A stretch of 45,186 nucleotides of DNA from Macrostomum lignano. Lineage: Eukaryota. The DNA lies in assembly GCA_002269645.1 (NCBI GenBank), contig NIVC01000310.1, forward strand, positions 1 to 45,186. Direction: 5' to 3'. Every line of letters starts with the position of its first letter. Positions within the stretch are counted from its first letter, which is position 1. A model generated the notes under the pieces. It was given only the letters and a program-made list of their open reading frames with translations. It did not search any database and had not been told where the DNA came from. The translations under genes were made by a program, and so were the position numbers. Shown here piece after piece: positions 12,761 to 45,186 of this stretch.

Positions 12761-14218
12761 ATCCAATCAAGTAGTATACCCAGAAATTTGTTCAAGTTGG
12801 TAGATTCTAGAAAGAGAAATATAACAATTCTTCCCATATATACAAACAATACAATAAATAGGCAATAATAGTTGCAATTTTATGACTTTTATGTATATTG
12901 ATTTAAAAAATAGTTTACTAATTTTCTGAGTTATTTTATGTTATGATAAGTTTTAAAAATATGATAAGCTTTCAGTTCCTCCCCTCTGACCTGACTGACA
13001 ACCAGAAATTATTATTAAACTAATGAGCTAGGCCTATGTCAGTTAGTCAATGACCTAGGCCTCTGCTATGTAACTGGAACAGGAGGGCTAAAATCTAAAT
13101 ATACTACAATTTGCCTTACAAAAAAAATCTAAAAAATGCAGCCAAACTGCTTTCTGTTTGGGCTCTTCCAAAAACTTGCTTTCTTCTATTGCCTCGGGTG
13201 TAAAACGAACGATACATACGCCAAGGACAACTTAAGTACTTAAAGTCGTCCTTGTTACGCATCATAGAAAATACCAAACTTAAACTTTTGCTAAGAGATT
13301 GAAGTAACAAACCTTAGTATAAAATAAGTTTTCGCCTGGTTATCTGATTTTTAGTTGTTTAAAAAATGAGTCAGTAAAGTAGTAAGTATCGAAATAAAAA
13401 CTAGGATTGAGAAACTAACCATGTCGCAGAAAATTTTATTTTGATGATCCAAATTTTAGAACACAGCCTGGCTCTACATGAAGTGCATGGGGTTTCGTTT
13501 AGCCCACAGACGCCTGACCTTTGACTTTTTTCATTGTTTCCCTTTCACCCCATTTTGCCAAAATATATCCATGTAGTTACTTTCTTATAAAGATAAACCA
13601 AACTAACTATAGAAATGAACATGCATGGCACACATGTTTATGTGACATGCTACGCATAGCATGTCAATTATAACTTTTGGTAAAACAAGTAAGCGAAGGC
13701 GGTAACCAAAGGCTGTGACATTTTTATACAAAAAATCTGATATATTGGAAAATGAAATGAAATAGTTGGTTGGAGAGAATCCGTGTGGCGCAGAAAAATA
13801 CTGGTTCAATCTGAGTTGAATTAATGCAAGTAGATTTAAAGTATTTTTATGTTACTTGTCATTTTGCTGATTCGAACGTGGCAGAGCTTAACAGAGCGCA
13901 TCCCTAACGTATACGATGCGGCATATGATATAATTTATTATACTGCTATTCAATAGGCGGTCGATTCCGGCCTCTGCAGTCGATGTCCTATTTCTGAAGT
14001 TGGTATCTGCTCTCTACAGATGATGCGGGCTGGCGGGAGTATGGCACCGAGTCCTGCCTGTCCCCTATCAGCGGGCCCTCTGACTGATGTTGATCCGCTG
14101 AGCCGTAGCTTGACGATACAAAGTTTGAGTTGCTAATGGCATAAGTAGGGATGGGAGCGGTGAAGTAGATTGGAGATGCATTTCTACAGATTACTGACCT
14201 ACAGTATAATAACAGTGC

Positions 14219-17200
14219 TCACAGCTTCTCCAACAGCCGGTCGTTGAGCCCCTCCCGGTACGGCTTGTCGATCGGGTAGAAGTGCATCAGCAGCAGGGCC
14301 AGGCAGACGCACACGATGGGCCCGGGGCCGAGCAGGTAGCGCAGTGCCAGGGCCACAGAGTACGGCTGCTCGCACGAGTTGCTGTCGTAGCCGCTGAAGC
14401 TGAGCACCAGCTGCGAGAGGGCGAGGCTGAGCCCGGAGGCGAACTTGGTGAAGAACACGTACAGGGAGTAGAAGGTGGCCTCCCTGCGCTCCCCAGTGCG
14501 GCAGTAAAAATCATCGATGACGTCAGGCAGCATGGACCAGGGCAGCAGCATGGCCACCGAGATGGACACGCCGGACACGCCGATGACTGCGTAGTAGGCG
14601 GCGACCAGTGGTCGTGGCGGGTCTCCTTCTAAATTTTCGCGCCACCCAAATTTTTTCGCGCCATAGGTATCTATATATACTATACAGCTAAGAATACCCA
14701 ACAAATTCAGACATGCACATGTGAATATGAAGGTAAAAATAGTTATGGAGGTGCAGAACATCATGAAATTTAATTATTCAAATGGGTGCCTGGAGTTTAA
14801 AGCTTCTTAATGAAAAAATAGCGCAAAAATGGGGGAATATTTTTCATATTTTCGCGCCATTAGCCATCCGCATTTTTCGCGCCATGGTCACAGAATTCGC
14901 GTATTCGCGCCATTTTCGCGCAGGCGCGAATTCGCGCCACCGCCACGACCACTGGCGGCGACGCTGTTGGGCGGCAGCGCCGTGGCCAGCATCAGACAGG
15001 GCAGCTGCGGCTGCGGGTTCGGGGCGGGAGGGCTTTCTGAGTGAGTCACTGCATGGGCTGGCAGCGCATGATGAGTAGCGTCTCAAGAGCCTGATTTGAA
15101 GTGCCTTAGACCCAGAGTGGTGCTTTGAGTTCTAACGGGACACCTTGAGTCCTAATGTGATAATCCTGAGTCCTGGTGTGATAAACTTGAGTCCTGATGT
15201 GATAATCCTGAGTCCTGGTGTGATAAACTTGAGTCCTGATGTGATAATCCTGAGTCCTGGTGTGATAATCCTGAGTCCTGGTGTGATAATCCTGAGTCCC
15301 ATGGTGTGATAATCCTGAGTCGTATAACTTCCGGCTAGGATGGAGGTCAGACAGAGGCTTACTATAGAAGATTTCGTCTCCAGACCGGGAGAAACCTCAG
15401 GAGCCAGATTGAGAACCCGATTGTAAAACAATCAGCAGCACTCCAGCTGCAGCTCACCAGCAGCCCAATCATGAAGATTCGCTTCTTGCCGAACCTGCCG
15501 CTCATCCTGGCCCAGAACGGCACCAGCAGGACGGCCACGGTGAGCACGGTGAAGATGCCCGAGTTCATGTGGCCGCCCATGCCGAGGCTGTGTGTGGTGT
15601 ACAGGCCCAGGTTGGCCTGCACCGTCTGCGGGGAGGGCAGCAAGTCCATATGGAGCTGCTTCAGTCCCTGGATCACTTTTGAGAGCTGAATAAATTCTTC
15701 ACAACTGACATGAGTTGAGTGAAAATCAAAAGCGTCACTGCATCAGTTTCGCAAATACCAGGGGTAAATGTACCCTTCCTGGCGCAATGCCTTCGGCGAC
15801 ATCGTTCCACATCCAGTGCTGACGGCAGTTCTGCCCGTTCCGCTGACTCCTGAGCACTCACAAGCGCGCCAACACCGACAACCGCCGGCCAATTTTCCTG
15901 CGCAAACCCCAAATTACGGTGGCTTCCCACGGGATCAAACCAAGGATCGTGGCCCGAGAGTAAGGCGCATTTACCGCTGAGCTGCTCTGCCCCAAGCAAT
16001 TGTGGAGCATTTGAAGAATTTGTGGAGCATTTGGTAAAGATTTAACATTTTTTTCAGAGAAAAAGTCCAGCTCAGTCCAGTCTTGGGGGGCTTCGATTTC
16101 CAGCTGATTTTGCGACCCACCTGAATGCCCAGAGACATGCAGAGGAAGGCCAGCATGAGCAACACGTATGGCCGGAATGCCAGGACGCTGCGCACGTTGC
16201 TCAGCAGGGAGTCCCGCCTGGCGTCCAGCCGGACCCGCTCCCGGATGCCGAAGGTGGCGAACAGACCGCAGGCGAAGTAGATCCCGGCGATCACCAGCGC
16301 GGCGAGGGCGTAGCCGCGACGCTACGAGGAAAATGCATGATGTTGAAGAACGTTTGGGTTTAAACTGTCAGCTGAGTCCCGATACCCGAGTCCCGATACC
16401 CGAGTCCCGATACCCGAGTCCCGATACCCGAGTCCCGATACCCGAGTCCCGATACCCGAGTCCCGATACCCGAGTCCCGATACCCGAGTCCCGATACCCG
16501 AGTCCCGATACCCGAGTCCCGATACCCGAGTCCCGATACCCGAGTCCCGATACCCGAGTCCCGATACCCGAGTCCCGATACCCGAGTCCCGATACCCGAG
16601 TCCCGATACCCGAGTCCCGATACCCGAGTCCCGATACCCGAGTCCCGATACCCGAGTCCCGATACCCGAGTCCCGATACCCGAGTCCCGATACCCGAGTC
16701 CCGATACCCGAGTCCCGATACCCGAGTCCCGATACCCGAGTCCCGATACCCGAGTCCCGATACCCGAGTCCCGATACCCGAGTCCCGATACCCGAGTCCC
16801 GATACCCGAGTCCCGATACCCGAGTCCCGATACCCGAGTCCCGATACCCGAGTCCCGATACCCGAGTCCCGATACCCGAGTCCCGATACCCGAGTCCCGA
16901 TACCCGAGTCCCGATACCCGAGTCCCGATACCCGAGTCCCGATACCCGAGTCCCGATACCCGAGTCCCGATACCCGAGTCCCGATACCCGAGTCCCGATA
17001 CCCGAGTCCAGAAAATTTTCACGGCACTGGAAGCCATAGAAAATTCATAAAGCTGAGGCGTCGCTCACTTCCGCCTGCAGCTGTTCGGGCGAGTCCGCCC
17101 CGCCGGAGTCGCCGGCTCCGCAGTCGGCCGCCAGGCGGTGGCGGCCGCTGACGGCGCCGAAGACGCCGGTGCCGATGATGGTGAACAGCAACTCGAAGCC

Positions 17201-20200
17201 GATTCTGCAGGCGGTGGCGCCGTCCTTGTCCTCAGCGCTGTTGGAGATCAGCATGGTGGAAGAGGCGTAGGGCACGTGGTAGCACTGCGGGTGGGGCCGG
17301 GATAAAAGTGCGATGGGGAGTGGAAGCTGGACAATGGTAAGCTGGACAATTTCCTCGAGACGTCTCTATTAAAAAGCAGTCAAGTACTCGTATTTAAAGC
17401 AATGCGGCCAAGTCCTTTTCTTCAAAAGCCATGCACTGGTTTGAATTCGGGGGCTGACAGAGCGAAATCCAAGGAAAATTTGATGCTGCAAAAAATAACC
17501 TCAGCGGTCCTTGGTTCGAATTTTTTTCAACCAAAGCGTATGCGTGAGGGAACTTCAGATCCAAGCAACTTGGACTTTAGTCGCGGCTGCTCACACCCCC
17601 CCCTGTTTATTGGTTCATTCTTTATCAACGAAACCGCTCTCGATGGCCAAACCTTCCAGGAGACCTGGAAACTCGATTTGTATACTCAAAATCCGATTCG
17701 CGTACTCCAAATCCGATTCACGTACTCAAAATCCGATTCACGTACTCAAAATCCGATTCACGTACTCAAAATCCGATTCACGTACTCAAAATCCGATTCA
17801 TGTACTCAAAATCCGATTCACATACTCAAAATCCGATTCACGTACTCAAAATCCGATTCACGTACTCAAAATCCGATTCACGTACTTAAAATCCGATTCA
17901 TGTATTCAAAATCTGATTCACGTACTCAAAATCCGATTCACATACTCAAAATCCGATTCACGTACTCAAAATCCGATTCACGTACTCCAAATCCGATTCA
18001 TGTATTCAAAATCTGATTCACGTACTCAAAATCCGATTCACGTACTCAAAATCCGATTCACGTTCTCAAAATCCGATTCACGTACTTAAAATCCGATTCA
18101 TTTATTCACGTACTCAGAATCCGATTACACCGTACTCAAAATCCGATTCACGTACTCAAAATCCGATTCACGTACTCAAAATCCGATTCATATACTCAAA
18201 ATCCGATTCACGTACTCAAAATCCGATTCACGTACGTAAATCCGATTTACGTACTCAAAATCCGATTCACGTACTCAGAATCAGATTCACGTACTCAAAA
18301 TCCGATTCACGTACTCAGAATCAGATTCACGTACTCAAAATCCGATTCACGTACTCAAAATCCGATTCACGTACTCAAAATCCGATTCACGTACTCAAAA
18401 TCCGATTCATATACTCAAAATCCGATTCACGTACTCAAAATCCGATTCACGTACTCAAAATCCGATTTACGTACTCAAAATCCGATTCACGTACTCAGAA
18501 TCAGATTCACGTACTCAAAATCCGATTCACGTACTCAGAATCAGATTCACGTACTCAAAATCCGATTCACGTACTCCAAATCCAATTCACGTACTCAAAA
18601 TCCGATTCACGTACTCAAAATCCGATTCACGTACTTAAAATCCGATTCATGTATTCAAAATCTGATTCACGTACTCAAAATCCGATTCACATACTCAAAA
18701 TCCGATTCACGTACTCAAAATCCGATTCACGTACTCCAAATCCGATTCATGTATTCAAAATCTGATTCACGTACTCAAAATCCGATTCACGTACTCAAAA
18801 TCCGATTCACGTTCTCAAAATCCGATTCACGTACTTAAAATCCGATTCATTTATTCACGTACTCAGAATCCGATTACACCGTACTCAAAATCCGATTCAC
18901 GTACTCAAAATCCGATTCACGTACTCAAAATCCGATTTACGTACTCAAAATCCGATTCACGTACTCAGAATCAGATTCACGTACTCAAAATCCGATTCAC
19001 GTACTCAGAATCCGATTCATGTACTCAAAATCCGATTCACATACTCAAAATCCGATTCACGTACTCAAAATCCGATTCACGTACTCAAAATCCGATTCAC
19101 GTACTTAAAATCCGATTCATGTATTCAAAATCTGATTCACGTACTCAAAATCCGATTCACATACTCAAAATCCGATTCACGTACTCAAAATCCGATTCAC
19201 GTACTCCAAATCCGATTCATGTATTCAAAATCTGATTCACGTACTCAAAATCCGATTCACGTACTCAAAATCCGATTCACGTTCTCAAAATCCGATTCAC
19301 GTACTTAAAATCCGATTCATTTATTCACGTACTCAGAATCCGATTACACCGTACTCAAAATCCGATTCACGTACTCAAAATCCGATTCACGTACTCAAAA
19401 TCCGATTCATATACTCAAAATCCGATTCACGTACTCAAAATCCGATTCACGTACGTAAATCCGATTTACGTACTCAAAATCCGATTCACGTACTCAGAAT
19501 CAGATTCACGTACTCAAAATCCGATTCACGTACTCAGAATCAGATTCACGTACTCAAAATCCGATTCACGTACTCAAAATCCGATTCACGTACTCAAAAT
19601 CCGATTCATATACTCAAAATCCGATTCACGTACTCAAAATCCGATTCACGTACTCAAAATCCGATTTACGTACTCAAAATCCGATTCACGTACTCAGAAT
19701 CAGATTCACGTACTCAAAATCCGATTCACGTACTCAGAATCAGATTCACGTACTCAAAATCCGATTCACGTACTCCAAATCCAATTCACGTACTCAAAAT
19801 CCGATTCACGTACTTAAAATCCGATTCATGTATTCACGTACTCAGAATCCGATTACACCGTACTCAAAATCCGATTCACGTACTCAAAATCCGATTCACG
19901 TACTCAAAATCCGATTCATATACTCAAAATCCGATTCACGTACTCAAAATCCGATTTACGTACTCAAAATCCGATTCACGTACTCAGAATCAGATTCACG
20001 TACTCAAAATCCGATTCACGTACTCAGAATCAGATTCACGTACTCAAAATCCGATTCACGTACTCAGAATCAGATTCACGTACTCAGAATCAGATTCACG
20101 TACTCAAAATCCGATTCACGTACTCCAAATCCGATTCACGTACTCAAAATCCGATTCACGTACTCAAAATCCGATTCATATACTCAAAATCCGATTCACG

Positions 20201-22266
20201 TACTCAAAATCCGATTCACGTACTCGAAATCCGATTTACGTACTCAAAATCCGATTCACGTACTCAGAATCAGATTCACGTACTCAAAATCCGATTCACG
20301 TACTCAGAATCAGATTCACGTACTCAAATCCGATTCACGTACTCAGAATCAGATTCACGTACTCAGAATCAGATTCACGTACTCAAAATCCGATTCACGT
20401 ACTCCAAATCCGATTCACGTACTCAAAATCCGATTCACGTACTCCAAATCCGACTCACGTACTCCAAATCCGATTCACGTACTCAAAATCCGATTCACGT
20501 ACTCCAAATCCGATTCATATACTCAAAATCCGATTCACGTACTCAAAATCCGATTCACGTACTCAGAATCAGATTCACGTACTCAGAATCAGATTCACGT
20601 ACTCAAAATCCGATTCACGTACTCAAAATCCGATTCACGTACTCAAAATCCGATTCACGTACTCAGAATCAGATTCACGTACTCAAAATCAGATTCACGT
20701 ACTCAGAATCTGATTCACGTACTCAAAATCCGATTCACGTACTCAAAATCCGATTCACGTACTCAAAATCCGATTCACGTACTTAAAATCCGATTCATGT
20801 ATTCACGTACTCAGAATCCGATTACACCGTACTCAAAATCCGATTCACGTACTCAAAATCCGATTCACGTACTCAAAATCCGATTCATATACTCAAAATC
20901 CGATTCACGTACTCAAAATCCGATTCACGTACTCCTAATCCGATTTACGTACTCAAAATCCGATTCACGTACTCAGAATCAGATTCACGTACTCAAAATC
21001 CGATTCACGTACTCAGAATCAGATTCACGTACTCAGAATCAGATTCACGTACTCAAAATCCGATTCACGTACTCAGAATCAGATTCACGTACTCAAAATC
21101 CGATTCACGTACTCCAAATCCGATTCACGTACTCCAAATCCGATTCACGTACTCAAAATCCGATTCAGGTACTCCAAATCCGATTCACGTACTCCAAATC
21201 CGATTCACGTACTCCAAATCCGATTCACGTACTCAGAATCAGATTCACGTACTCAGAATCAGATTCACGTACTCAAAATCAGATTCACGTACTCAAAATC
21301 CGATTCACGTACTCAAAATCCGATTCATATACTCAAAATCCGATTCACGTACTCCAAATCCGATTCACGTACTCCAAATCCGATTGACGTACTCCAAATC
21401 CGATTCACGTACTCAGAATCAGATTCACGTACTCAAAATCCGATTCACGTACTCAAAATCAGATTCACGTACTCCAAATCCGATTCACGTACTCAGAATT
21501 AGATTCACGTACTCCAAATCCGATTCACGTACTCAGAATCAGATTCACGTACTCCAAATCAGATTCACGTACTCAAAATCCGATTCACGTACTCCAAATC
21601 CGATTCACGTACTCCGAATCCGATTGACGTACTCCAAATCCGATTCACGTACTCAGAATCAGATTCACGTACTCAAAATCCGATTCACGTACTCAAAATC
21701 CGATTCACGTACTCCAAATCAGATTCACGTACTCAAATCCACATCATCCATGGCGAGTCTGTTGACTGCTGCTGGGCTCTGGATTCCGCTCTATATCTTA
21801 CTGGCGCGACATGATCGGGAAGGTCTGCACCCAGAAGGCACACTGGGTGCTGCAATTGCTATTTCAATGAATGCTCCGTGTCTCACCGTGATGCAGGCGC
21901 AGTAGGCCAGGTAGCTCAGCAGGTGGTAGGAGAACGCAGAGCCGGCGCTGCCGCTCAGCCACATGGCCAGGAAGGCGGCCGGGCCCAGCGCGGTGGCCGC
22001 GGCCAGCCACGGCTTCGTGCGGCCGCACCGGGTTCGAGTCCGCAGCACCAGCTGGCCAACCAGCGGGTCGGTGGCGGCGTCCCACAGTCTGCCCGCAAAG
22101 GTGATGGCGGACACCTGGGCAGGACTGAGGCGCACAGCCTCCAGCAGGTAGATGCTGAAGAAGAAGCCGCAGATGTTGCTCGTCATCTGCAGTGGCGGCG
22201 CGGCCAGGCCGAACAGCAGCTTCCGGCACAGCGACAGGCGGGCTGCGGGGGCCGAATGCGCAGACT
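14219..22266 (-). CDS. MFSD2A: MFSD2-family (MFSD2A/B-like, MelB/GPH-type MFS) lipid transporter; one exon interrupted by a MITE; start exon not fixed (exons 22266-21887, 17284-17069, 16321-16121, 15625-15458, 15004-14955 + 14597-14219)
   Basis: Motifs GFFFSIYLLE, GRLWDAATDPLVG, CYHVPY, LLPWSMLPDVIDDF, EATFYSLYVFFTKFASG and YPID match MFSD2 proteins. Introns are GT-AG and phase 0. A candidate start exon (MTDLTSQLIGNGKTK|gtatta near 22634-22678) is in frame only with the second AG of the acceptor, so it is unconfirmed. A versus B orthology cannot be decided from the sequence. Confidence 0.88.
14606..14954. mobile_element. 349-bp hAT-type MITE inserted in an MFSD2 coding exon
   Basis: Perfect 15-bp TIRs (CAGTGGTCGTGGCGG 14606-14620; CCGCCACGACCACTG 14940-14954) and a perfect 8-bp target duplication (GCGGCGAC at 14598-14605 and 14955-14962). 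Subterminal TTCGCGCCA repeats are present. Removing the element and one TSD restores ...PPNSVAAYYAVIG... Confidence 0.93.
15148..15320. repeat. 21-bp minisatellite (TGTGATAATCCTGAGTCCTGG), MFSD2 intron
   Basis: About 8 copies. Confidence 0.92.
16374..17008. repeat. 14-bp minisatellite (GAGTCCCGATACCC), MFSD2 intron
   Basis: About 45 copies; no variant unit seen. Confidence 0.97.
17681..21737. repeat. ~4-kb 20-bp satellite (CGTACTCAAAATCCGATTCA), MFSD2 intron
   Basis: About 200 copies with point variants and higher-order blocks. Confidence 0.97.
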
Positions 22267-22481: not shown

Positions 22482-23891
22482 AACTAGCTCCTAGTCACAG
22501 TATGGGATCAGCAGGCTAAGTCGCAAGCCATTCAGTGAATCAGGACACCATATAATAAACTTCGGCCTACATTGAACAACATATTAAGTGCTCTAGACCA
22601 TGCAGGTTAAGCAAAAAAGATCGTATTTAATACCTTGGTTTTGCCATTGCCAATCAGCTGCGATGTCAAGTCGGTCATTTTTAAATGATTAGGTCTTGCC
22701 TTGCAGCTGCCTTCGCACTAATAGCTGTAGCTACAGTGTTTGCAGATCAGGAGCTCAGTCCATGGAGAAACCGTCTATCTGAATGCATTCAATAATGTTT
22801 GCAGAGGCAGACCTGTCGAGCTGTGTTGAATAAATTTTGCCGAAGCTCCTAACTGTCCGGCAATCTCAGAAGCAATGTATAGCACATGCAGGCTGCTACA
22901 GCTCCAATTGATCGAGTGACTCAGCTCAGTGACACCGCGTTATCAACAACTCGACAGCCTGCTGACTGTACGCTGATATTGCATTGCTAAATATAATGAC
23001 ACGCACGCTGTACTTTGTACCATTTGAACTCAAATTGTACATCAGCATGCAGATTGCAACGTAATCCATACGCTGAATTTCGTTATTTTAGTGCAGCTCG
23101 GAAAAGCTGCGTGTCACAATGAATGTACGCTTGTGCGCTACATTTATATTAATACACAGCACTACAATTTTGCGAACATGCAGCATAACACATGCAGTTA
23201 TATTGATTTTGTCAGCCAATTTAATACTCGTAGTTTAGCCAACCGAAGTTAAGAATTCCCATTTATAGGGAGCAGCTGCATGGAGACTATCAGTCTTCTT
23301 GTCCATAGTGTATAGGCTTGCAGTGTAGGCGGGAAAAGGCATGTAGAATCAATATTGTAGGCCTTATCTTTAAGTCTCAAGACTCAATAAAGCTTTATGG
23401 GGGTCCGTGTTTTTACGGAAGGGAACGGCAGATGCATGAGCCGAGGACAGGCCGATCGACGTACAGCCCGCGATCGAGACGGAGCCCGAGAGGGGTTGCG
23501 CAATTTTTAATTACCGAGACGGAATCAAACGCCAAGACGAAAGAATACAACATACACGTGTATAAGTATAAACTCGGTATAGCCTCGAGCGGTGTGCCAA
23601 CTTAAGGCGGGTTCTCCTTTACATGTACATGTCATATTAGCAGATACTGTATAATAATGTAATTATGTGCAGACAAAATATGGGAAAATACTAGATGCCT
23701 ATTACTATGGTCTTGCCATCTGGAAATGTGTCTAGAGATGTTGAGAAAAAATATTGCGTAGTGGATATTCAGGGGACTATTCTACGAGTATATTCAAATG
23801 TTTTACTACGTGTAACAATTTGAAGGCACGTTCGTGCGTGTCGTAAATTTCCCTTTTTAGGGTCTTTCAAATTCTCATAGCTAATGTAACT

Positions 23892-38368: not shown

Positions 38369-39117
38369 GGCAGTGGCCTCGCATCCCGACGGACACCCGG
38401 GCTGCTCGTCTCCCAGTTTTAGCCCGGGTGCAGGTCCAATCAGCGCTTCGCTTGCTGCCTGCAGCCGTGCTGGCCAATGGCGGCGTCTCAGAGCTCAGCT
38501 GTGCGGAGCAGGCGGCCGGCAGCGGCTTTCCTCCAGCTTACGCGATCGCAAATTGGCCGCTGAGGCCCAGGCGCAGGGCTGCAGTTTCTGTCCCAGGCAG
38601 TGGAATATTTAATGAACTGCTTGAAATTTGGGCTTTGAATTCCAGGGGAACTTGGAGAGGATTGGGAATTAGAGATGTTTGACGGGATTGACTGGGAGCC
38701 AGTTACCTGACTGCACTGAGCTCGCTTTGCAGATTTCAAAGAGTAGGCGGCGGCCGCTTAAACAATTGATATGCGTTGTCGGTGTACCAGCCCCTGTCTG
38801 AGCAGAGTCTGAGCAGAGCAGGGCTGGGTGAGAGGGGCTGCTGGGTGAGCATGAGGCGGCAAGGTACACCATGCGTTAGTAGTCAGAAAATTGTGTAAGC
38901 TGCATAGCGTGAATATGGGATTTTGTTTGCACAACTGCGGTCTCAAAGACCAGAAGCTGGTGCAAATACAGCTCGGCCTCATCCATCACCAGAAACTCTT
39001 CTTTCAATTTAATTTCAACCTAAAATTCGGGGACCAGCGAAATTGATAGCTGAGGAGCTTCAGGGAAATGAAACTGCCGTGCGTGCTGTGCAAGGATCGG
39101 CTAAGCCTGGAAAATTA

Positions 39118-39736
39118 ATGACTGTCTGGCGTTCAAGACAGAATTTGTGTCGTCAATTGTCTCATTCAGCGGTATGAGAGGGTTTTTAAGGAGTGTTTTT
39201 GTGCGGTGTGCTGGCGTTTCTGCTGTTAAAAGTTGGAAGTGTAAATGATATATGCATAATGAGTTTTTAAGCTTTATTTGATCGATCGACGATCTCGATC
39301 AGGCGGCCTTGTAGGTTGTAGGCACAGAAAAATGTATGGTGACTCCAGGGATCATTGCACTCAAAGCGAAATTGAATCACAGGGCAAATGCTTTTGATCT
39401 TGTCCTTTCTGACCTTTTTGCCCACGTGACAGCTTGCATGCGCTGTCCAATAGGTTGCTGTATTACGCTGGTACCAGCAGCAAATATGGTATCGGCAGTG
39501 TGGACGACCTGCCCCTGAATCAGTGGCAACTGCAGTCTGGCAACTCCACGGGCCAAAGAGCTACATCTTTCAGCCAGTACGTGTAAGACTGTGCGCTTCA
39601 TACTTAACAATTTGAAGAATGAATTCGCAGAAGAATTCTGTTCTTGCACACAGCTAACACGATCAATTGCGCAAACTGCGGCTACATTGCAGTGTTAGGC
39701 GACAATTGGCCGAGCCGAACTTCCAGCTGTTGCTAA
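39118..39736 (+). CDS. Candidate small spliced gene of unknown function, divergent from NIM1K (exons 39118-39171, 39322-39338, 39454-39582, 39631-39736)
   Basis: Phase-compatible GT-AG chain giving MTVWRSRQNLCRQLSHSA|AQKNVW|LLYYAGTSSKYGIGSVDDLPLNQWQLQSGNSTGQRATSFSQYV|... No homology was recognised. Confidence 0.25.
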
Positions 39737-40175
39737 GGCGCTGCTCGGTGGTACCTGTGCACTCCACCATATGTGCTGATGCTGAGTAGCTCTTTAGTGC
39801 AGCGGGAAATATAGCTACTGTCACACAGCTAGTGCATGGCTCCCCACACAGCTGATTCAACTGCTATTCATGAAGCAGAATTTTGGAGTATAAATTTAAT
39901 CTGATCTGACGTTGAATTATATGACAGAATTTTTTCTAAACAGAATGTTCTTTGCGCAAATTAAAAGCGTCATTTTTATTTGTGTTCCAATTTTATTTTC
40001 ATTTTCCATTCTTTTGTGCTTTTTAACAGCAAAATTTTTTATTAAAAATCATATTTCTCTACTTTACTTTAAACTGTTTGCAGTATTTTTTACAATAAAT
40101 AAATGAGACACTGGTAATGAGAGATAAGTTAAACAATTGTTGTGTTGCCAAGGATTAAATATCATTGAAATTAAG

Positions 40176-40992
40176 TTACGGAACGTAACGGGAAGGTAGT
40201 TAATTACGGATAGTGATACGGATAGGCTACGGGAAAATTAAATACGGCTATACTACAGATACACGGCTAAAATTTTGAACCCTACGTGGAACTCTATGAA
40301 AATCGAATTCATTTCAAGTACTTTGTTGAGTAACTCTGAGCATAAATCTTAAAAAAGTCTGAGTATTTGTCAGAGTAACTATTCCTTTGCTATTCCTAAA
40401 CCCGGACCTCTCCGACATTTTCAGGCCCGAGAATCTCTGCCAGCTCGTCTGCTACCTAAGGGCTACCGGGCGAGCGACAATCCACCCCCTGGACTCTCCG
40501 GAGGGGGACCACGCTGCGGACACCGGCACAATCGGCACTAGCTGCCCGTGGTCGCCAGGCGTTAGCGGAATGGGCTGCAACCGCCCCCTCGCTGTTTCCT
40601 GATGCACGGAGCCCCTTGCAGCAAAGTCAAGTAAGTCAAGAGCACAAATCTAAAAAACTCTGAGTATTTGTCAGAGTACTATTCCTTTGCTTTTATAGTT
40701 ATGCGCGTAATTTATTCTATGGTTTTATTAATAAGTTACTTTGTTTAATTGGATTCCGTTTTCAATAAATTCAAACGACTCATATTTGAACATGCAAAAT
40801 TTGTGATCATAGTCTTAGATCGTATGTTAATGAAATATATGACAGCAACTATATGGTATACCATATTTCCGTAAGTCGTAGCCGTAAGAGCAGGTATCTA
40901 TTATAGGCGTATCCGTAATTGCCGTAGGTATCTATTTTACCATATTTGCCATAGGATCCAGTAGCCATAGCCGTAGCTACGGCAGAACACTA
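40176..40992. mobile_element. DNA-transposon remnant with inverted subterminal TACGG/CCGTA repeats (host of the LINE fragment)
   Basis: About 5 TACGG copies at 40177-40247 and about 5 CCGTA copies at 40869-40975 in the opposite orientation. The left TIR was not identified. Confidence 0.45.
40392..40639 (+). mobile_element. 5'-truncated non-LTR retrotransposon 3' end flanked by ~53-bp direct repeats
   Basis: GC-rich island in AT-rich DNA. It encodes ...[19 protein letters not shown]..., resembling a LINE ORF2 C-terminus, and ends in AAGTCAAGTAAGTCAAG. Flanks 40338-40391 and 40640-40691 are near-identical. Confidence 0.6.
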
Positions 40993-41556
40993 TAACTAAA
41001 GCATATATAACAAATCTAGGCCTATAACTAAACATAAAAAGTTTCTAGGCCTATGCCATACTTTCAAAGAGTAATGATAATGATGCTGCTTTTTGGGGGG
41101 GGGGGGAATAGTTGCATACAAAAAGGTCCCAGGCAGTCTAGTATCGCATATATAGCATACATCAAGGAGTTAGAAAAAAGATTTTGGCATGCTTCACACA
41201 ACAGCGCCGCATTTAAATTTTTTGGCGTGCCATCACTATCAGAGCTAGGCACTATAGCTGTACACATTGGAATTTTTAAGGCTTTTAAAACATAATGCGA
41301 TAGCTTTTAAAATGAGTATCCTAGGCCTATGGCATTCCTTCAGTTTACGATCATTGAAATTAGTGACAATGACGATCCCCATTGGAGAGATAGTGAAGAT
41401 ACAAAATTGTTGTTTATTTCATCAAAATGCAAAAACAGTAGACAAGCACTCCAATCCTTTTTATTTATCCATCATAACACTAGCTGCATGTTCAAATGAA
41501 AAAAGAAGGTAAAGGGGTTATAGTGATCCATTTCATAGTTCCAAGAATCCAAAGAT

Positions 41557-42123
41557 GATCCTATATATCCACTTCAGTTATCGGTTTACAATCATTTAAA
41601 CGGAAGCAATACATGTAAATGATCGTGAACCAAAGCTAGCGTATGTGTGTAAGGGGGTTTTGGTGTTTTACAAGCTTTATCTGAAATTGATCATTATCTC
41701 AATACATGGCTAGCTTCGGTTCACGATCATTGACATGTATTGCTTATATCTAAATGATCGTAAACCGAAGATGAGGGGGGGTAGCAGCGTGCAGAGAATA
41801 ATAAAGCATCAAGTTACTTGGGAGCGCACATTAACTCAAGATGACATTTCAATCGCCAACAAGCCACCAAATAAATATATGACTACATATGTCTTCGACA
41901 CCCCCCTCCCCCTTAGCTTCGGTACACGATCATTTAAATGGAAGAAATACATGTAAATGATCATGAACCAAAGCTAGCCATGTATTAAGATAGTGATCGA
42001 TTTCAAATAGAGCTTGTAAAATACCAAAACCCCCTTACACACATACGCTAGCTTCGGTTCACTATCATTTACATGTATTGCTTTCGTTTAAATGATCGTA
42101 AACCAAAGTGGATATATGGGATC
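41557..42123. mobile_element. Foldback element: ~225-bp inverted arms, each itself palindromic
   Basis: Arm 41557-~41782 is the reverse complement of ~41897-42123. Each arm holds two inverted copies of a ~60-bp module (CGGTTTACAATCATTTAAA...TACATGTAAATGATCGTGAACCAAAGCTAGC). Confidence 0.8.
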
Positions 42124-42421
42124 CTCGTCATCGCCATGCCATGAAAGAAACCATTTGTTGGCTATTCCGTTCAGTTTTTTCTAATGTAACGAATAAGCTC
42201 AGTTTAACAATTTTTGTTTATTTCAAGCAAGCTATTATCATTTATATGAAAAATTACATGGGGATTGTGAACCGAAATGTGGGTGGAAAAATGATTGTAA
42301 ACCGAAGGAATGCCTATCCTATAATATAACAATATTAAAAAGCACATTGTTTTTTATTGTAAGGTAAAATTTTTTTAGGTCACTATAATAAATAAGAATT
42401 TTTATAAACAGCGAGCTTGAC

Positions 42422-42745
42422 TACATGGTAGCCATCTATGCAGTGTTTGAATTGTGTGCATGGCAGCTGCATCTCAGCAGCTGCATGCACTAAAAACTTA
42501 TTATACAATATGATATCATATTCTGTTTGAATTATTGAAAATTAATGTTCAAGTTTACAAAATAGCTATAAATTGAGATGAAGTTGTACATAGGATCAAA
42601 CAATAAATTATTAAATAAGACTATAAGTTCTATGAGTTGCAACATGCAGATTTGAGGGAAAGGGTCTAATTTGGTATTTGCTATATTGCTGATCTATTGG
42701 CTGTTGTGCATACAATTAGAATACTGGGTAGATGGCTTCCATGTA
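42422..42745. mobile_element. Degenerate relative of the 25238-25678 MITE
   Basis: Inverted ends TACATGGTAGCCATCTA / TAGATGGCTTCCATGTA. Shares the AATTG(C/T)GTGCATGGCAG motif and the internal AATTAAT(A/G)TTCAAGTT(A/T)ACAAAA with the 25.2-kb element. Confidence 0.6.
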
Positions 42746-43986
42746 CAAATATTGCTTTTTGCAGCTTTGTTCTATCTACTATGGTTCAAAAGTTACATAC
42801 ATGCGCAACTTCTGAAATTACGCTGGCCGTGCGACTTAGTTTTCGATAAAAAATGTGACTTACCTATGAAAGAGCCAAGCAAAAACTTTAGGTAAACGGC
42901 AGGAGTAACTATGGCCATCTTTTTAAAGCTAAATGCCTCGCCAGCTAATTAGTGCTGCGTGCAGATTTCGCGTTTTTATAACAGCTAATCAGTATGTCAT
43001 CTAGTGGCGGCATGAAGCAATTAGTAAATTGTCAGTACAGTGTAGTGAGCATACTACAAAAGTCATGATTCATGAATGTCCAGAAGTAAGTAAAGTGAAT
43101 ACAGTGTGACCTATGGCTATAGCTCAAGAACAATTTGCTAGACGATTTGGCATGGAAGATGAGAGCCCTGATTCAGATGGCTCATCAGATGCAGAATACG
43201 AATCCAGTAGAGATACAAGCTGTGAAAACCCACAGATTTTTAAACCACTGAATTCTAATTCCCGGAACTATGTTTGCATAGATTCTAAATTTGAAGTCAT
43301 GCTCAAACAAAAACAAAAACAGTCTCTCAAAAATTTAGTCACGAGTCATGAAACCATAAGTAAATGGAGCATCATTAAGAACCATTTACTTTTTCAGTAC
43401 AAGACAAAAATTGAACTTGATTTTTCATACAATGCAATGTAACCTAATGGGGAAGAGTTTGAGGCTTGCAATTTTAGGCATGGAAAAAACAGCACAAACT
43501 GGTACAATTTTTTAGAATAGTGCTGTAATCAGACAGTCGCTAGGAAAGTCGTCAAAGAGCCTAAATCTGGCCAATACTAACTCACAAAACACTGCCTTTT
43601 AAAATTGAGGGATAAAATTAAAGCAAATGAAAAGTTGAATGCATTCTAGACAAATACATAAAAAATTGAGCTATGAAGTAGCATTATCTAGGCCAATAAG
43701 ATTAGTTGTGAATAAAAGAAACGCATCCTATAAATAATTTGATGCATTTTTTGCTGCCAATTTCAAAAGCTTGTTTCCAGTTTTTTTGCTATTGGTTTAA
43801 CTACAAAATATATTTAGCTAGAAAAAAGATTTTTTATGTCATTAATTTGGTAGGAAAGCTGCCTTTTATATTTATTTAGCATTTAGCATATTCATATTGA
43901 AGTCTCAGACAAAAGGTAAAGTTCAAGCAGCAAGTTTACTATTATAAAAAATCACCAAAAAATAATTTTGTATGCATATAAAATGT

Positions 43987-45050
43987 CTAGCAAAAAGAGT
44001 TTTCTTCTAGTATACCAATTAGTGACAAATCAGGAGTTGATGAAAATACATACTGAATAATTTCTACATGTAGAAGAAGCAAGTTCCAAAAATCATTATC
44101 ATCCTCTGTGACAAAGAAGCCTAATAACAATGGTAAAATAATAATAAGAGTATAAATATCTGCTGCTTTCATGGGAATTGAATAGTTATTTAGATGGCGC
44201 CTTTCAATTGGAGCAAACTTAATGGCAAAAAAGTTTTGAATACAGAATTTATTACTGCCACACTCAGGAGTTGTTTTGATATACAATTCAACAAAACAAA
44301 GCAGATAATAGTTTGTGATACTCCACATAGAAAATCATACATGATATCAGGTGGAAAAAACATTGGCAAAAAAATATAAGAAAGCTTATTAAAAGGGATG
44401 TTAAATCTTTCAAAGAAATCTTTATGCTCCCAACAAGGATGCAAAATACTTTCTGTTATTGATTGCAAAATATTATTAGCCTCAAAACTACAAAAGTGAC
44501 AAACTTTACTATAACAAAAATACTTTGGAAGACCCAAAATAGGATTAATAGCTAGAATATCACTAGCAAAGAAATACATCATAACATTAAGTCTAGTGGA
44601 AACATGATTACAAGAAAATTCAAACCCATCAAAGAAAAGTATGTTTAATTCTTCAATAATTACATCTAACAGTGATAAAGAAAATGTTTTTGAATTACAT
44701 AGACCAATCAAATGCCTACCTTCTTCTTTACTTTGAAAAAGTGGTAGAATATTGAGAATTTGATAATAAATACCAACTAACTTATTGAAACCTTTACTTG
44801 AACCAATAGGATTGCACACTTCAAATTCATCAGTATACAGAGAAATATGAATTGGATATTGAAAGTTACAGGACAAAATTTGAATTTCAGATTGAAAAAA
44901 GTAGAATTAAAGAAAGGACCAAAGCAACATTGTGGGTGATTAAAAACTAAATTTAAAAAATGCTTGTTCTGCAATATTCGGGACAATGAAGACTCAATTG
45001 GAATATAATAGCATGGCTTTGAAAGAAGACCATCAACTGATAAGTCTAAT
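43987..45050 (-). pseudogene. Decayed CMC/EnSpm-like (Plavaka-related) transposase
   Basis: LYTDEFEVCNPIGSSKGFNKLVGIYYQILNILP, D.LA.N.I.G...F....CHFC and PPDIMYDFLCG match the LYxDxxExxNPLG / CxxC / DxMHD pattern of animal EnSpm-like transposases. The ORF is split by frameshifts over 45103-44777, 44876-44190 and 44328-43987. The family assignment is from memory. Confidence 0.65.
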
Positions 45051-45186
45051 AAAATTAGATTAGCAACTAGCAATCTAGTGCGGCCCCCCTTCGGGGCGCC
45101 CAATAAGAAAGGAGCAAAAATAGTTCATGGAAAACAATAAAAAAACACATTTTCTTAAACACTAATTCCTTCTTCACATTTTAAAA

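Follow-up and report, generated by a model that had tools for sequence, protein, structure and literature searches.

A hAT-like miniature inverted-repeat transposable element in a coding exon of an MFSD2-like gene of Macrostomum lignano: probably a recent truncating allele sheltered by an intact gene copy

Splicing of the transposable element Ds1 out of messages has reportedly been shown experimentally in maize, and the principle is said to have been known since the late 1980s. Ds1 is a non-autonomous member of the Ac/Ds group of hAT elements, ∼400 bp long, with an 11-bp terminal inverted repeat (TIR) and an 8-bp target-site duplication (TSD) (PMC3260210), and two titles in the reference list of that paper (B37 and B39) concern its splicing from exons of Adh1-Fm335 and wx. 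Introners, described from Micromonas, Aureococcus, dinoflagellates and others, are multi-copy families of near-identical, efficiently spliced introns, and one Aureococcus family adds 12 nt in frame, composed of 4 nt of the element and the 8-bp TSD (PMC9860276, Fig. 2F). Here we describe a 349-bp hAT-like element of comparable anatomy from the flatworm Macrostomum lignano, where it lies in a coding exon of an MFSD2-like transporter gene, on the minus strand of a 45,186-nt stretch of contig NIVC01000310.1 (positions 1 to 45,186; assembly GCA_002269645.1, Mlig_3_7), hereafter the window. A sequence-only reading of the window had proposed that this is an intron being born from a transposon. The analysis presented below does not support that proposal; we consider it likely that a recent insertion of a hAT-like miniature inverted-repeat transposable element (MITE) has produced a truncating allele of a triplicated gene, in one or two of its copies, and that an intact copy shelters it.

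Like Ds1, the M. lignano element is of the hAT type, non-autonomous and short, has an 8-bp TSD and short TIRs, lies in a coding exon, and has GT dinucleotides near one end and AG dinucleotides near the other, which could permit its imperfect removal from the message. It differs in that its potential splice sites are weak and it is retained in the deposited transcript models, whereas splicing of Ds1 was reportedly shown by experiment, and in that its host is a flatworm and not a plant. As in introners, a DNA element with TIRs and TSD sits within coding sequence, and its hypothetical removal would leave the TSD and a few element bases in frame; unlike introners, it was found at a single locus (in duplicated copies), has poor splice signals and is annotated as retained. 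The locus has Ds1- or introner-like anatomy but, given the weak signals, the retention in annotated transcripts and the lack of any family found, it falls short of the functional features of these systems as far as they were tested. We see no essential difference from ordinary null alleles caused by MITEs and other DNA transposons in duplicated genes, which are likewise recent, have intact TIRs and TSD, carry a premature stop and coexist with an intact empty-site copy in the same genome; what is particular here is the presence of both filled and empty sites in one assembly of a neopolyploid flatworm.

Two more syntenic copies of the gene are present in Mlig_3_7, on NIVC01002977.1 (L003) and NIVC01000636.1 (L002). 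The element, which is read on the minus strand from 14954 to 14606 and has an AT-rich core, consists of the following parts:

14606 to 14954, minus strand: hAT-like non-autonomous element (MITE), 349 bp, in exon 6; identical at 349 of 349 positions in L003, absent from L002
14940 to 14954, minus strand: 5′ TIR (gene orientation), CAGTGGTCGTGGCGG; 100% complementary to the other end
14606 to 14620, minus strand: 3′ TIR (gene orientation), CCGCCACGACCACTG; inverted-repeat match
14955 to 14962, minus strand: TSD copy 1, GTCGCCGC, codons V-A-A; single copy at the empty site of L002
14598 to 14605, minus strand: TSD copy 2, GTCGCCGC; from comparison with the empty site of L002
14851 to 14938, minus strand: 5′ subterminal cluster of four GGCGCGAA motifs and one inverted motif within the palindrome GGCGCGAATTCGCGCC; repeat search
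14636 to 14662, minus strand: 3′ subterminal cluster of two GGCGCGAA motifs, oriented as in the 5′ cluster; repeat search
14888 to 14890, minus strand: TGA, first in-frame stop on read-through and end of the annotated coding sequence (CDS) of PAA85648.1; translation

The TIRs are perfect over 15 nt, or 16 nt when one TSD base is included. The 8-mer GGCGCGAA occurs within the element six times on the same strand and once inverted (four copies and the inverted one near the 5′ end, two near the 3′ end); the remainder of the 45-kb window has none. These subterminal motifs are direct, not inverted, in orientation between the two ends, and the palindrome built by one of them contains an EcoRI site. 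By our own estimate, made without a dedicated tool (∼4e7 position pairs multiplied by 4^-15), some 0.04 perfect 15-nt inverted repeats at most 1 kb apart are expected in 45 kb, and an adjacent 8-bp repeat lowers this by a further factor of 4^-8, which puts the anatomy of the element far beyond chance.

The TIRs of hAT elements open with 5′-YARNG (CAG or TAG), their insertion sites follow a weak target consensus, nTnnnnAn, and repeated subterminal motifs are of the transposase-binding type. In the M. lignano element, the 8-bp sequence GTCGCCGC is found at both ends, the short TIR begins with CAGTG and short subterminal motifs are repeated; compared with the target consensus, GTCGCCGC has T at position 2 and G at position 7, which is the evidence of one site only. 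From these features we infer, in agreement with the sequence-only reading, a non-autonomous MITE of the hAT superfamily. Together with one TSD copy the element measures 357 nt (3 × 119), so that the insertion itself preserves the frame and the protein is broken solely by three in-frame stops. The sequence ...LPPNSVAA precedes it and YYAVIGVSG... follows it; read-through translation of the element gives SGRGGGANSRLRENGANTRIL and then the TGA at 14890-14888. All the boundaries previously given, namely the 349-bp length, the perfect 15-bp TIRs, the 8-bp TSD that splits PPNSVAA/YYAVIG and the TGA, were confirmed to the base.

Comparison with empty alleles or paralogues had been suggested as a check, and the three copies provide it. 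L003 matches the window at 100% identity across a 751-bp stretch that spans the site together with the element; the identity is 99.3% over 7.6 kb (window 17012-9410) and 92–97% elsewhere, the two copies being identical from exon 5 onward. L002 is 91–98% identical to the window and lacks the element, having a single GTCGCCGC and no footprint (cccaacagcGTCGCCGCctactac), and its protein, PAA79396.1, is an intact, full-length transporter of 529 aa that reads ...PPNSVAAYYAVIG... across the site. This clean empty site is proof of the insertion and of its TSD. That the insertion is recent is suggested by its perfect TIRs and TSD, together with the identity of the element in the two filled copies.

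Upstream of the 7.6-kb block the window is nearer to the empty copy L002 (97–98%), and such mosaic identity suggests gene conversion or recombination among the homeologous copies. In M. lignano, the DV1 line has extra large chromosomes and is a hidden tetraploid (PMC5519732), and 180 Mb of Mlig_3_7 lie within duplicated blocks that are at least 95% identical (PMC5730564).

The host gene belongs to the MFSD2-like transporters. The open reading frame (ORF) at its 3′ end matches PF13347 (MFS_2) with E = 1.4e-29, the MFSD2A structures 7oix, 8d2s, 7mjs and 7n98 match the host protein with E values from 6e-77 to 3e-73 and, once the element and one TSD copy are removed, the exon gives a colinear, gap-free alignment to MFS_2/MFSD2 proteins across the insertion site; the earlier assignment of the exon to the MFSD2 family thus holds. 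Mapping of annotated proteins back onto the DNA yielded a gene model with seven coding exons:

22634 to 22678, minus strand: exon 1 (ATG...AAG/GTATTA), out of frame with exon 2 in the window copy
21887 to 22266, minus strand: exon 2, in which the annotated CDS begins, at the internal Met 22186
17069 to 17284, minus strand: exon 3
16121 to 16321, minus strand: exon 4
15458 to 15625, minus strand: exon 5
14223 to 15010, minus strand: exon 6 as a whole, element included
14955 to 15010, minus strand: portion of exon 6 upstream of the insertion (exon 6a), 56 nt, acceptor CCCGCAG/CCG
14223 to 14597, minus strand: portion of exon 6 downstream of the insertion, 375 nt, donor GCT/GTGAGC at 14222
13988 to 14132, minus strand: exon 7, the last coding exon, with the stop

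At the start of exon 2 (∼22237-22254) the window copy has a net loss of 4 nt relative to both other copies (a 3-nt deletion and C4 to C3). Exon 1 is thereby thrown out of frame, and as a result the annotated CDS begins at the internal Met; the loss could be a genuine second lesion or an assembly error in a homopolymer.

The GenBank model from the window, PAA85648.1 (BOX15_Mlig021662g2), ends with ...PPNSVAASGRGGGANSRLRENGANTRIL*, and the model from L003, PAA54054.1, has the same truncated CDS. In both, the ordinary introns are spliced normally, after which exon 6a continues directly into the element and the reading frame stops at the TGA. GenBank models of Mlig_3_7 were derived from RNA-seq only, using STAR, StringTie, TACO, de novo transcripts and TransDecoder (PMC5730564); in the window model, exon 6a therefore runs on into at least 66 nt of the element. 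Two clusters at 90% identity, to which both truncated models belong, were inspected, and neither had a GenBank protein with a spliced junction.

These observations are consistent with a simple course of events, in which a non-autonomous hAT-like MITE would recently have jumped into exon 6 in one lineage of an MFSD2-like lysolipid-transporter gene. The pre-mRNA would keep the element, translation would proceed 21 codons into it and end at the TGA, and the resulting protein would be devoid of the last transmembrane helices. Such an allele is presumably a loss-of-function one, possibly sensitive to nonsense-mediated decay, and would persist because the hidden-tetraploid, partly aneuploid DV1 genome has a near-identical, intact empty-site copy whose redundancy probably makes the loss tolerable. 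A null allele had been named as the real alternative in the sequence-only reading, and it is the better-supported of the two.

Could the element be spliced? Two clusters of candidate sites are relevant here:

14939 to 14953, minus strand: candidate cryptic donors, weak, in the TIR stem; GT at 14952, 14949, 14946 and 14940 score 2.2, −2.8, −3.6 and 0.6 bits, against a median of 7.8 for real donors
14623 to 14631, minus strand: TAG-AAG-GAG, candidate cryptic acceptors that share the phase of the donors; −4.2, −4.3 and −8.2 bits, against a median of 6.0 for real acceptors

The arithmetic of the proposed splicing is correct. All four GT dinucleotides are in phase 1, the AGs end at 14629, 14626 and 14623 and are mutually in phase, and every combination of the four donors with the three acceptors is in frame and stop-free. 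With the donor at 14952 and the exon taken up again at 14628, splicing takes out 324 nt (14952-14629) and leaves 33 extra nt, which encode KGDPPRPLVAA. Such arithmetic is easily satisfied: the site has 42 in-frame, stop-free GT..AG pairs, and when the element was shuffled 500 times with its dinucleotides preserved, such pairs turned up in 100% of the shuffles, and pairs with a length change of no more than 45 nt in 76%.

The quality of the sites was assessed with a position weight matrix (PWM) built from 20 independent M. lignano introns of this gene and three of its paralogues, with leave-one-out scores for the real sites. Real donors are GTRAG-like (median 7.8 bits), and 18 of the 20 score at least 5.7, whereas the element donors CCA/GTGGTC (14952) and GCG/GTGGCG (14940) are matched by 20–37% of all genomic GT. 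Real acceptors have a C/T-rich stretch followed by CAG, with a minimum score of −0.9 bits; those of the element are matched by 53–75% of all genomic AG. The pyrimidine tract, which the sequence-only reading had already called poor, is absent altogether. In addition, on folding as RNA the two TIRs pair into a terminal stem of 17 bp, rich in GC (z = −3.5), which encloses both candidate donors. The splice sites of the element are thus indistinguishable from random GT and AG dinucleotides, and the functional splice sites that characterize introners have no counterpart here (donors at 2.2 and 0.6 bits, acceptors at −4.2 or below). The strongest cryptic acceptor nearby, at 14410 (7.3 bits), was considered as a means of rescue and rejected, being in frame only with a donor at 14962 (−6.0 bits) and at the cost of 65 codons.

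To place the insertion in the protein, we used an AlphaFold prediction for P0031, a full-length paralogue (mean predicted local distance difference test score 81, and >90 around the site). In this predicted structure a 6-residue loop (382-387) is followed by a long helix that starts at residue 388, and the insertion point comes after residue 390, three residues inside the helix. The proposed placing at a short inter-helix loop is therefore largely borne out, the exact point being just inside the next helix. Since the TSD doubles V-A-A, a hypothetical spliced product would regain the helix start VAAYYAVIG and have a loop 11 residues longer, which is relevant only if splicing happens.

No further copies of the element, TIR-like sites or GGCGCGAA motifs were found in loci L001-L007, and no second copy is present in the ∼190 kb of non-redundant M. 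lignano DNA sampled. An exhaustive HMMER search of 1.84 billion protein representatives with the 59-aa in-frame peptide of the element gave no matches; read-through, element and junction peptides used as protein-database queries also gave none, but this search missed the known models as well and is uninformative. A metagenome scan with the 22-nt terminus of the element returned two matches, both rejected as chance similarities that end with the terminus itself, in bacterial contigs of 69% GC. The Rfam scan of the whole window had no matches.

Several points weigh against a plain truncating allele. The element has 19 in-frame pairs with a small length change, a number reached by only 0.2% of the shuffles; this abundance is due to the 3-nt periodicity of GTGGTCGTGGCGGTGG and TAGAAGGAG. 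The PWM is rough, coming from 20 introns of a single gene family, even if the gap between real and candidate sites is large. Retention of the element is deduced from the deposited annotation, whose pipeline tolerated as many as 1000 multi-mappings and filtered out any isoform under 0.75 of the major one (PMC5730564), so that a minor spliced isoform would be invisible in it. A UniProt entry from the older ML2 assembly, A0A1I8J773 (P0029), does splice 14941/14628, reading ...PPNSVAASGRG-EGDPPRPLVAAYYAVIG..., and the exons downstream of the insertion are still intact in the filled copies, an observation that has no power either way. The filled and empty copies differ by 10 synonymous and 2 non-synonymous substitutions; the insertion being young, these differences mostly predate it, the ratio is uninformative on selection since then, and a dN/dS test of continued function was dropped. 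Our search of the literature and its supplements found no expression data for Mlig021662 and Mlig007043.

On these grounds one might argue for leaky, imperfect splicing in the manner of Ds1, in which a minority of transcripts would use the donor at 14952 or 14940 with the TAG, AAG or GAG acceptor, gain 9–15 codons and encode a hypomorphic protein, the element being possibly an incipient intron. Besides the clustering of in-frame, stop-free sites, which is rare in shuffles, and the isoform filter that would have hidden a minor product, this is favoured by the regenerated helix start, with the extra residues landing in the 6-residue loop, by the junction that a gene predictor picked independently (A0A1I8J773), and by the precedents of Ds1, as far as the reference titles in PMC3260210 go, and of the Aureococcus introners (PMC9860276). 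We nevertheless regard it as unlikely: the sites are at background level and without a pyrimidine tract, the donors are buried in the stem, the major transcript models retain the element and neither the DNA sampled nor the peptide search gave any sign of a family of such introns. As to A0A1I8J773, its last exon is different and out of frame, and an ML2 sibling, A0A1I8IIR1 (P0153), is translated straight through an intron made of a 21-bp minisatellite and joins the transporter to a SAMHD1-like gene; judged by this behaviour, the ML2 models look like predictions of an ab initio type in which introns are introduced to preserve an ORF, and A0A1I8J773 was accordingly not counted as RNA evidence. 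A third ML2 model, A0A1I8FET6 (P0008), is an artefact like A0A1I8IIR1: it begins within the 3′ TIR of the element and is translated in a shifted frame. That the filled copies yield a real minority of in-frame spliced mRNA (14953/14628 or 14941/14628) and with it a working transporter whose loop is 11–15 residues longer appears improbable to us.

A multi-copy Introner family that routinely makes spliced introns across M. lignano genes would account for the TIRs and TSD, the short length and a GC content below that of the exons, as in introners (PMC9860276), and yet it is very hard to reconcile with the remaining data: there is no second copy in the DNA sampled and no trace of the peptide in the protein representatives, splicing would be imprecise and rely on weak sites, the annotated transcripts keep the element, the four paralogues all lack an intron at the insertion position, and flatworms go unmentioned in the main text of the introner survey (PMC9860276). 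A mis-joining of the element into the exon during assembly is scarcely credible. The assembly is PacBio-based, repeat-rich and redundant, but the identical insertion with its perfect TSD stands on two Mlig_3_7 scaffolds whose flanks differ by 3–8%, it is mirrored in two proteins from the independent ML2 assembly (A0A1I8J773 and A0A1I8FET6), and a precise 8-bp TSD with matching TIRs is atypical of assembly errors. The idea of an intron being born, or of an imperfect introner that keeps the gene functional, thus gives way to that of a truncating MITE insertion, given the background-level sites, the in-frame spliceability of every shuffle and the retention of the element in RNA-derived models.

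If minority splicing did occur, the locus would show a hAT MITE caught at the first step toward an intron in an animal, with the empty homeologue as an internal control, and the filled/filled/empty trio in an animal amenable to transgenesis would make a handy test of the splicing of a raw transposon insertion; even then, the principle would already be known from Ds1 and introners. As it stands, the locus is a textbook transposon-insertion allele and its value is mainly practical. The perfect ends and identical copies are evidence of recent movement of a hAT-like MITE in M. lignano, the annotation of BOX15_Mlig021662g1 and g2 should be corrected, as these are models truncated by a transposon and not genuine short isoforms, and A0A1I8J773 illustrates how an ab initio gene finder can invent an intron to skip a transposon.

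Neighbours of the host gene are a TDP2-like gene and a SAMHD1-like gene with an HD domain, as judged from Pfam domains of genes called in the paralogous loci. The AT-rich block at window 39000-45186 (29–44% GC) contains several ORFs of 100–230 aa (e.g. 44190-44876, minus strand) with no Pfam match and may be a decayed mobile element. One paralogue, P0032 (535 aa, 50% identical; locus L005, NIVC01002642.1, 10001-11608), is intronless and likely a retrogene. All introns of the host gene are filled with minisatellites, e.g. at window 17683-21737, 16374-17009 and 15146-15321 (introns 2, 3 and 5), whose copy number differs among the three gene copies. In intron 2, a 20-bp unit repeated 200 times brings the length to 4602 nt in the window, compared with 1480 nt in L002 and 1567 nt in L003, and intron 3 measures 747, 858 and 1531 nt in the three copies; a 14-bp unit repeated 45 times is 100% homogeneous. 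ORFs of Ty3/gypsy-type long terminal repeat retrotransposons (RVT_1, RNase H, rve) adjoin MFSD2-like genes in a related metagenome contig (L001, 3571-6552) and likewise in two M. lignano paralogue loci (L006, 30438-33661; L007, 4032-7847).

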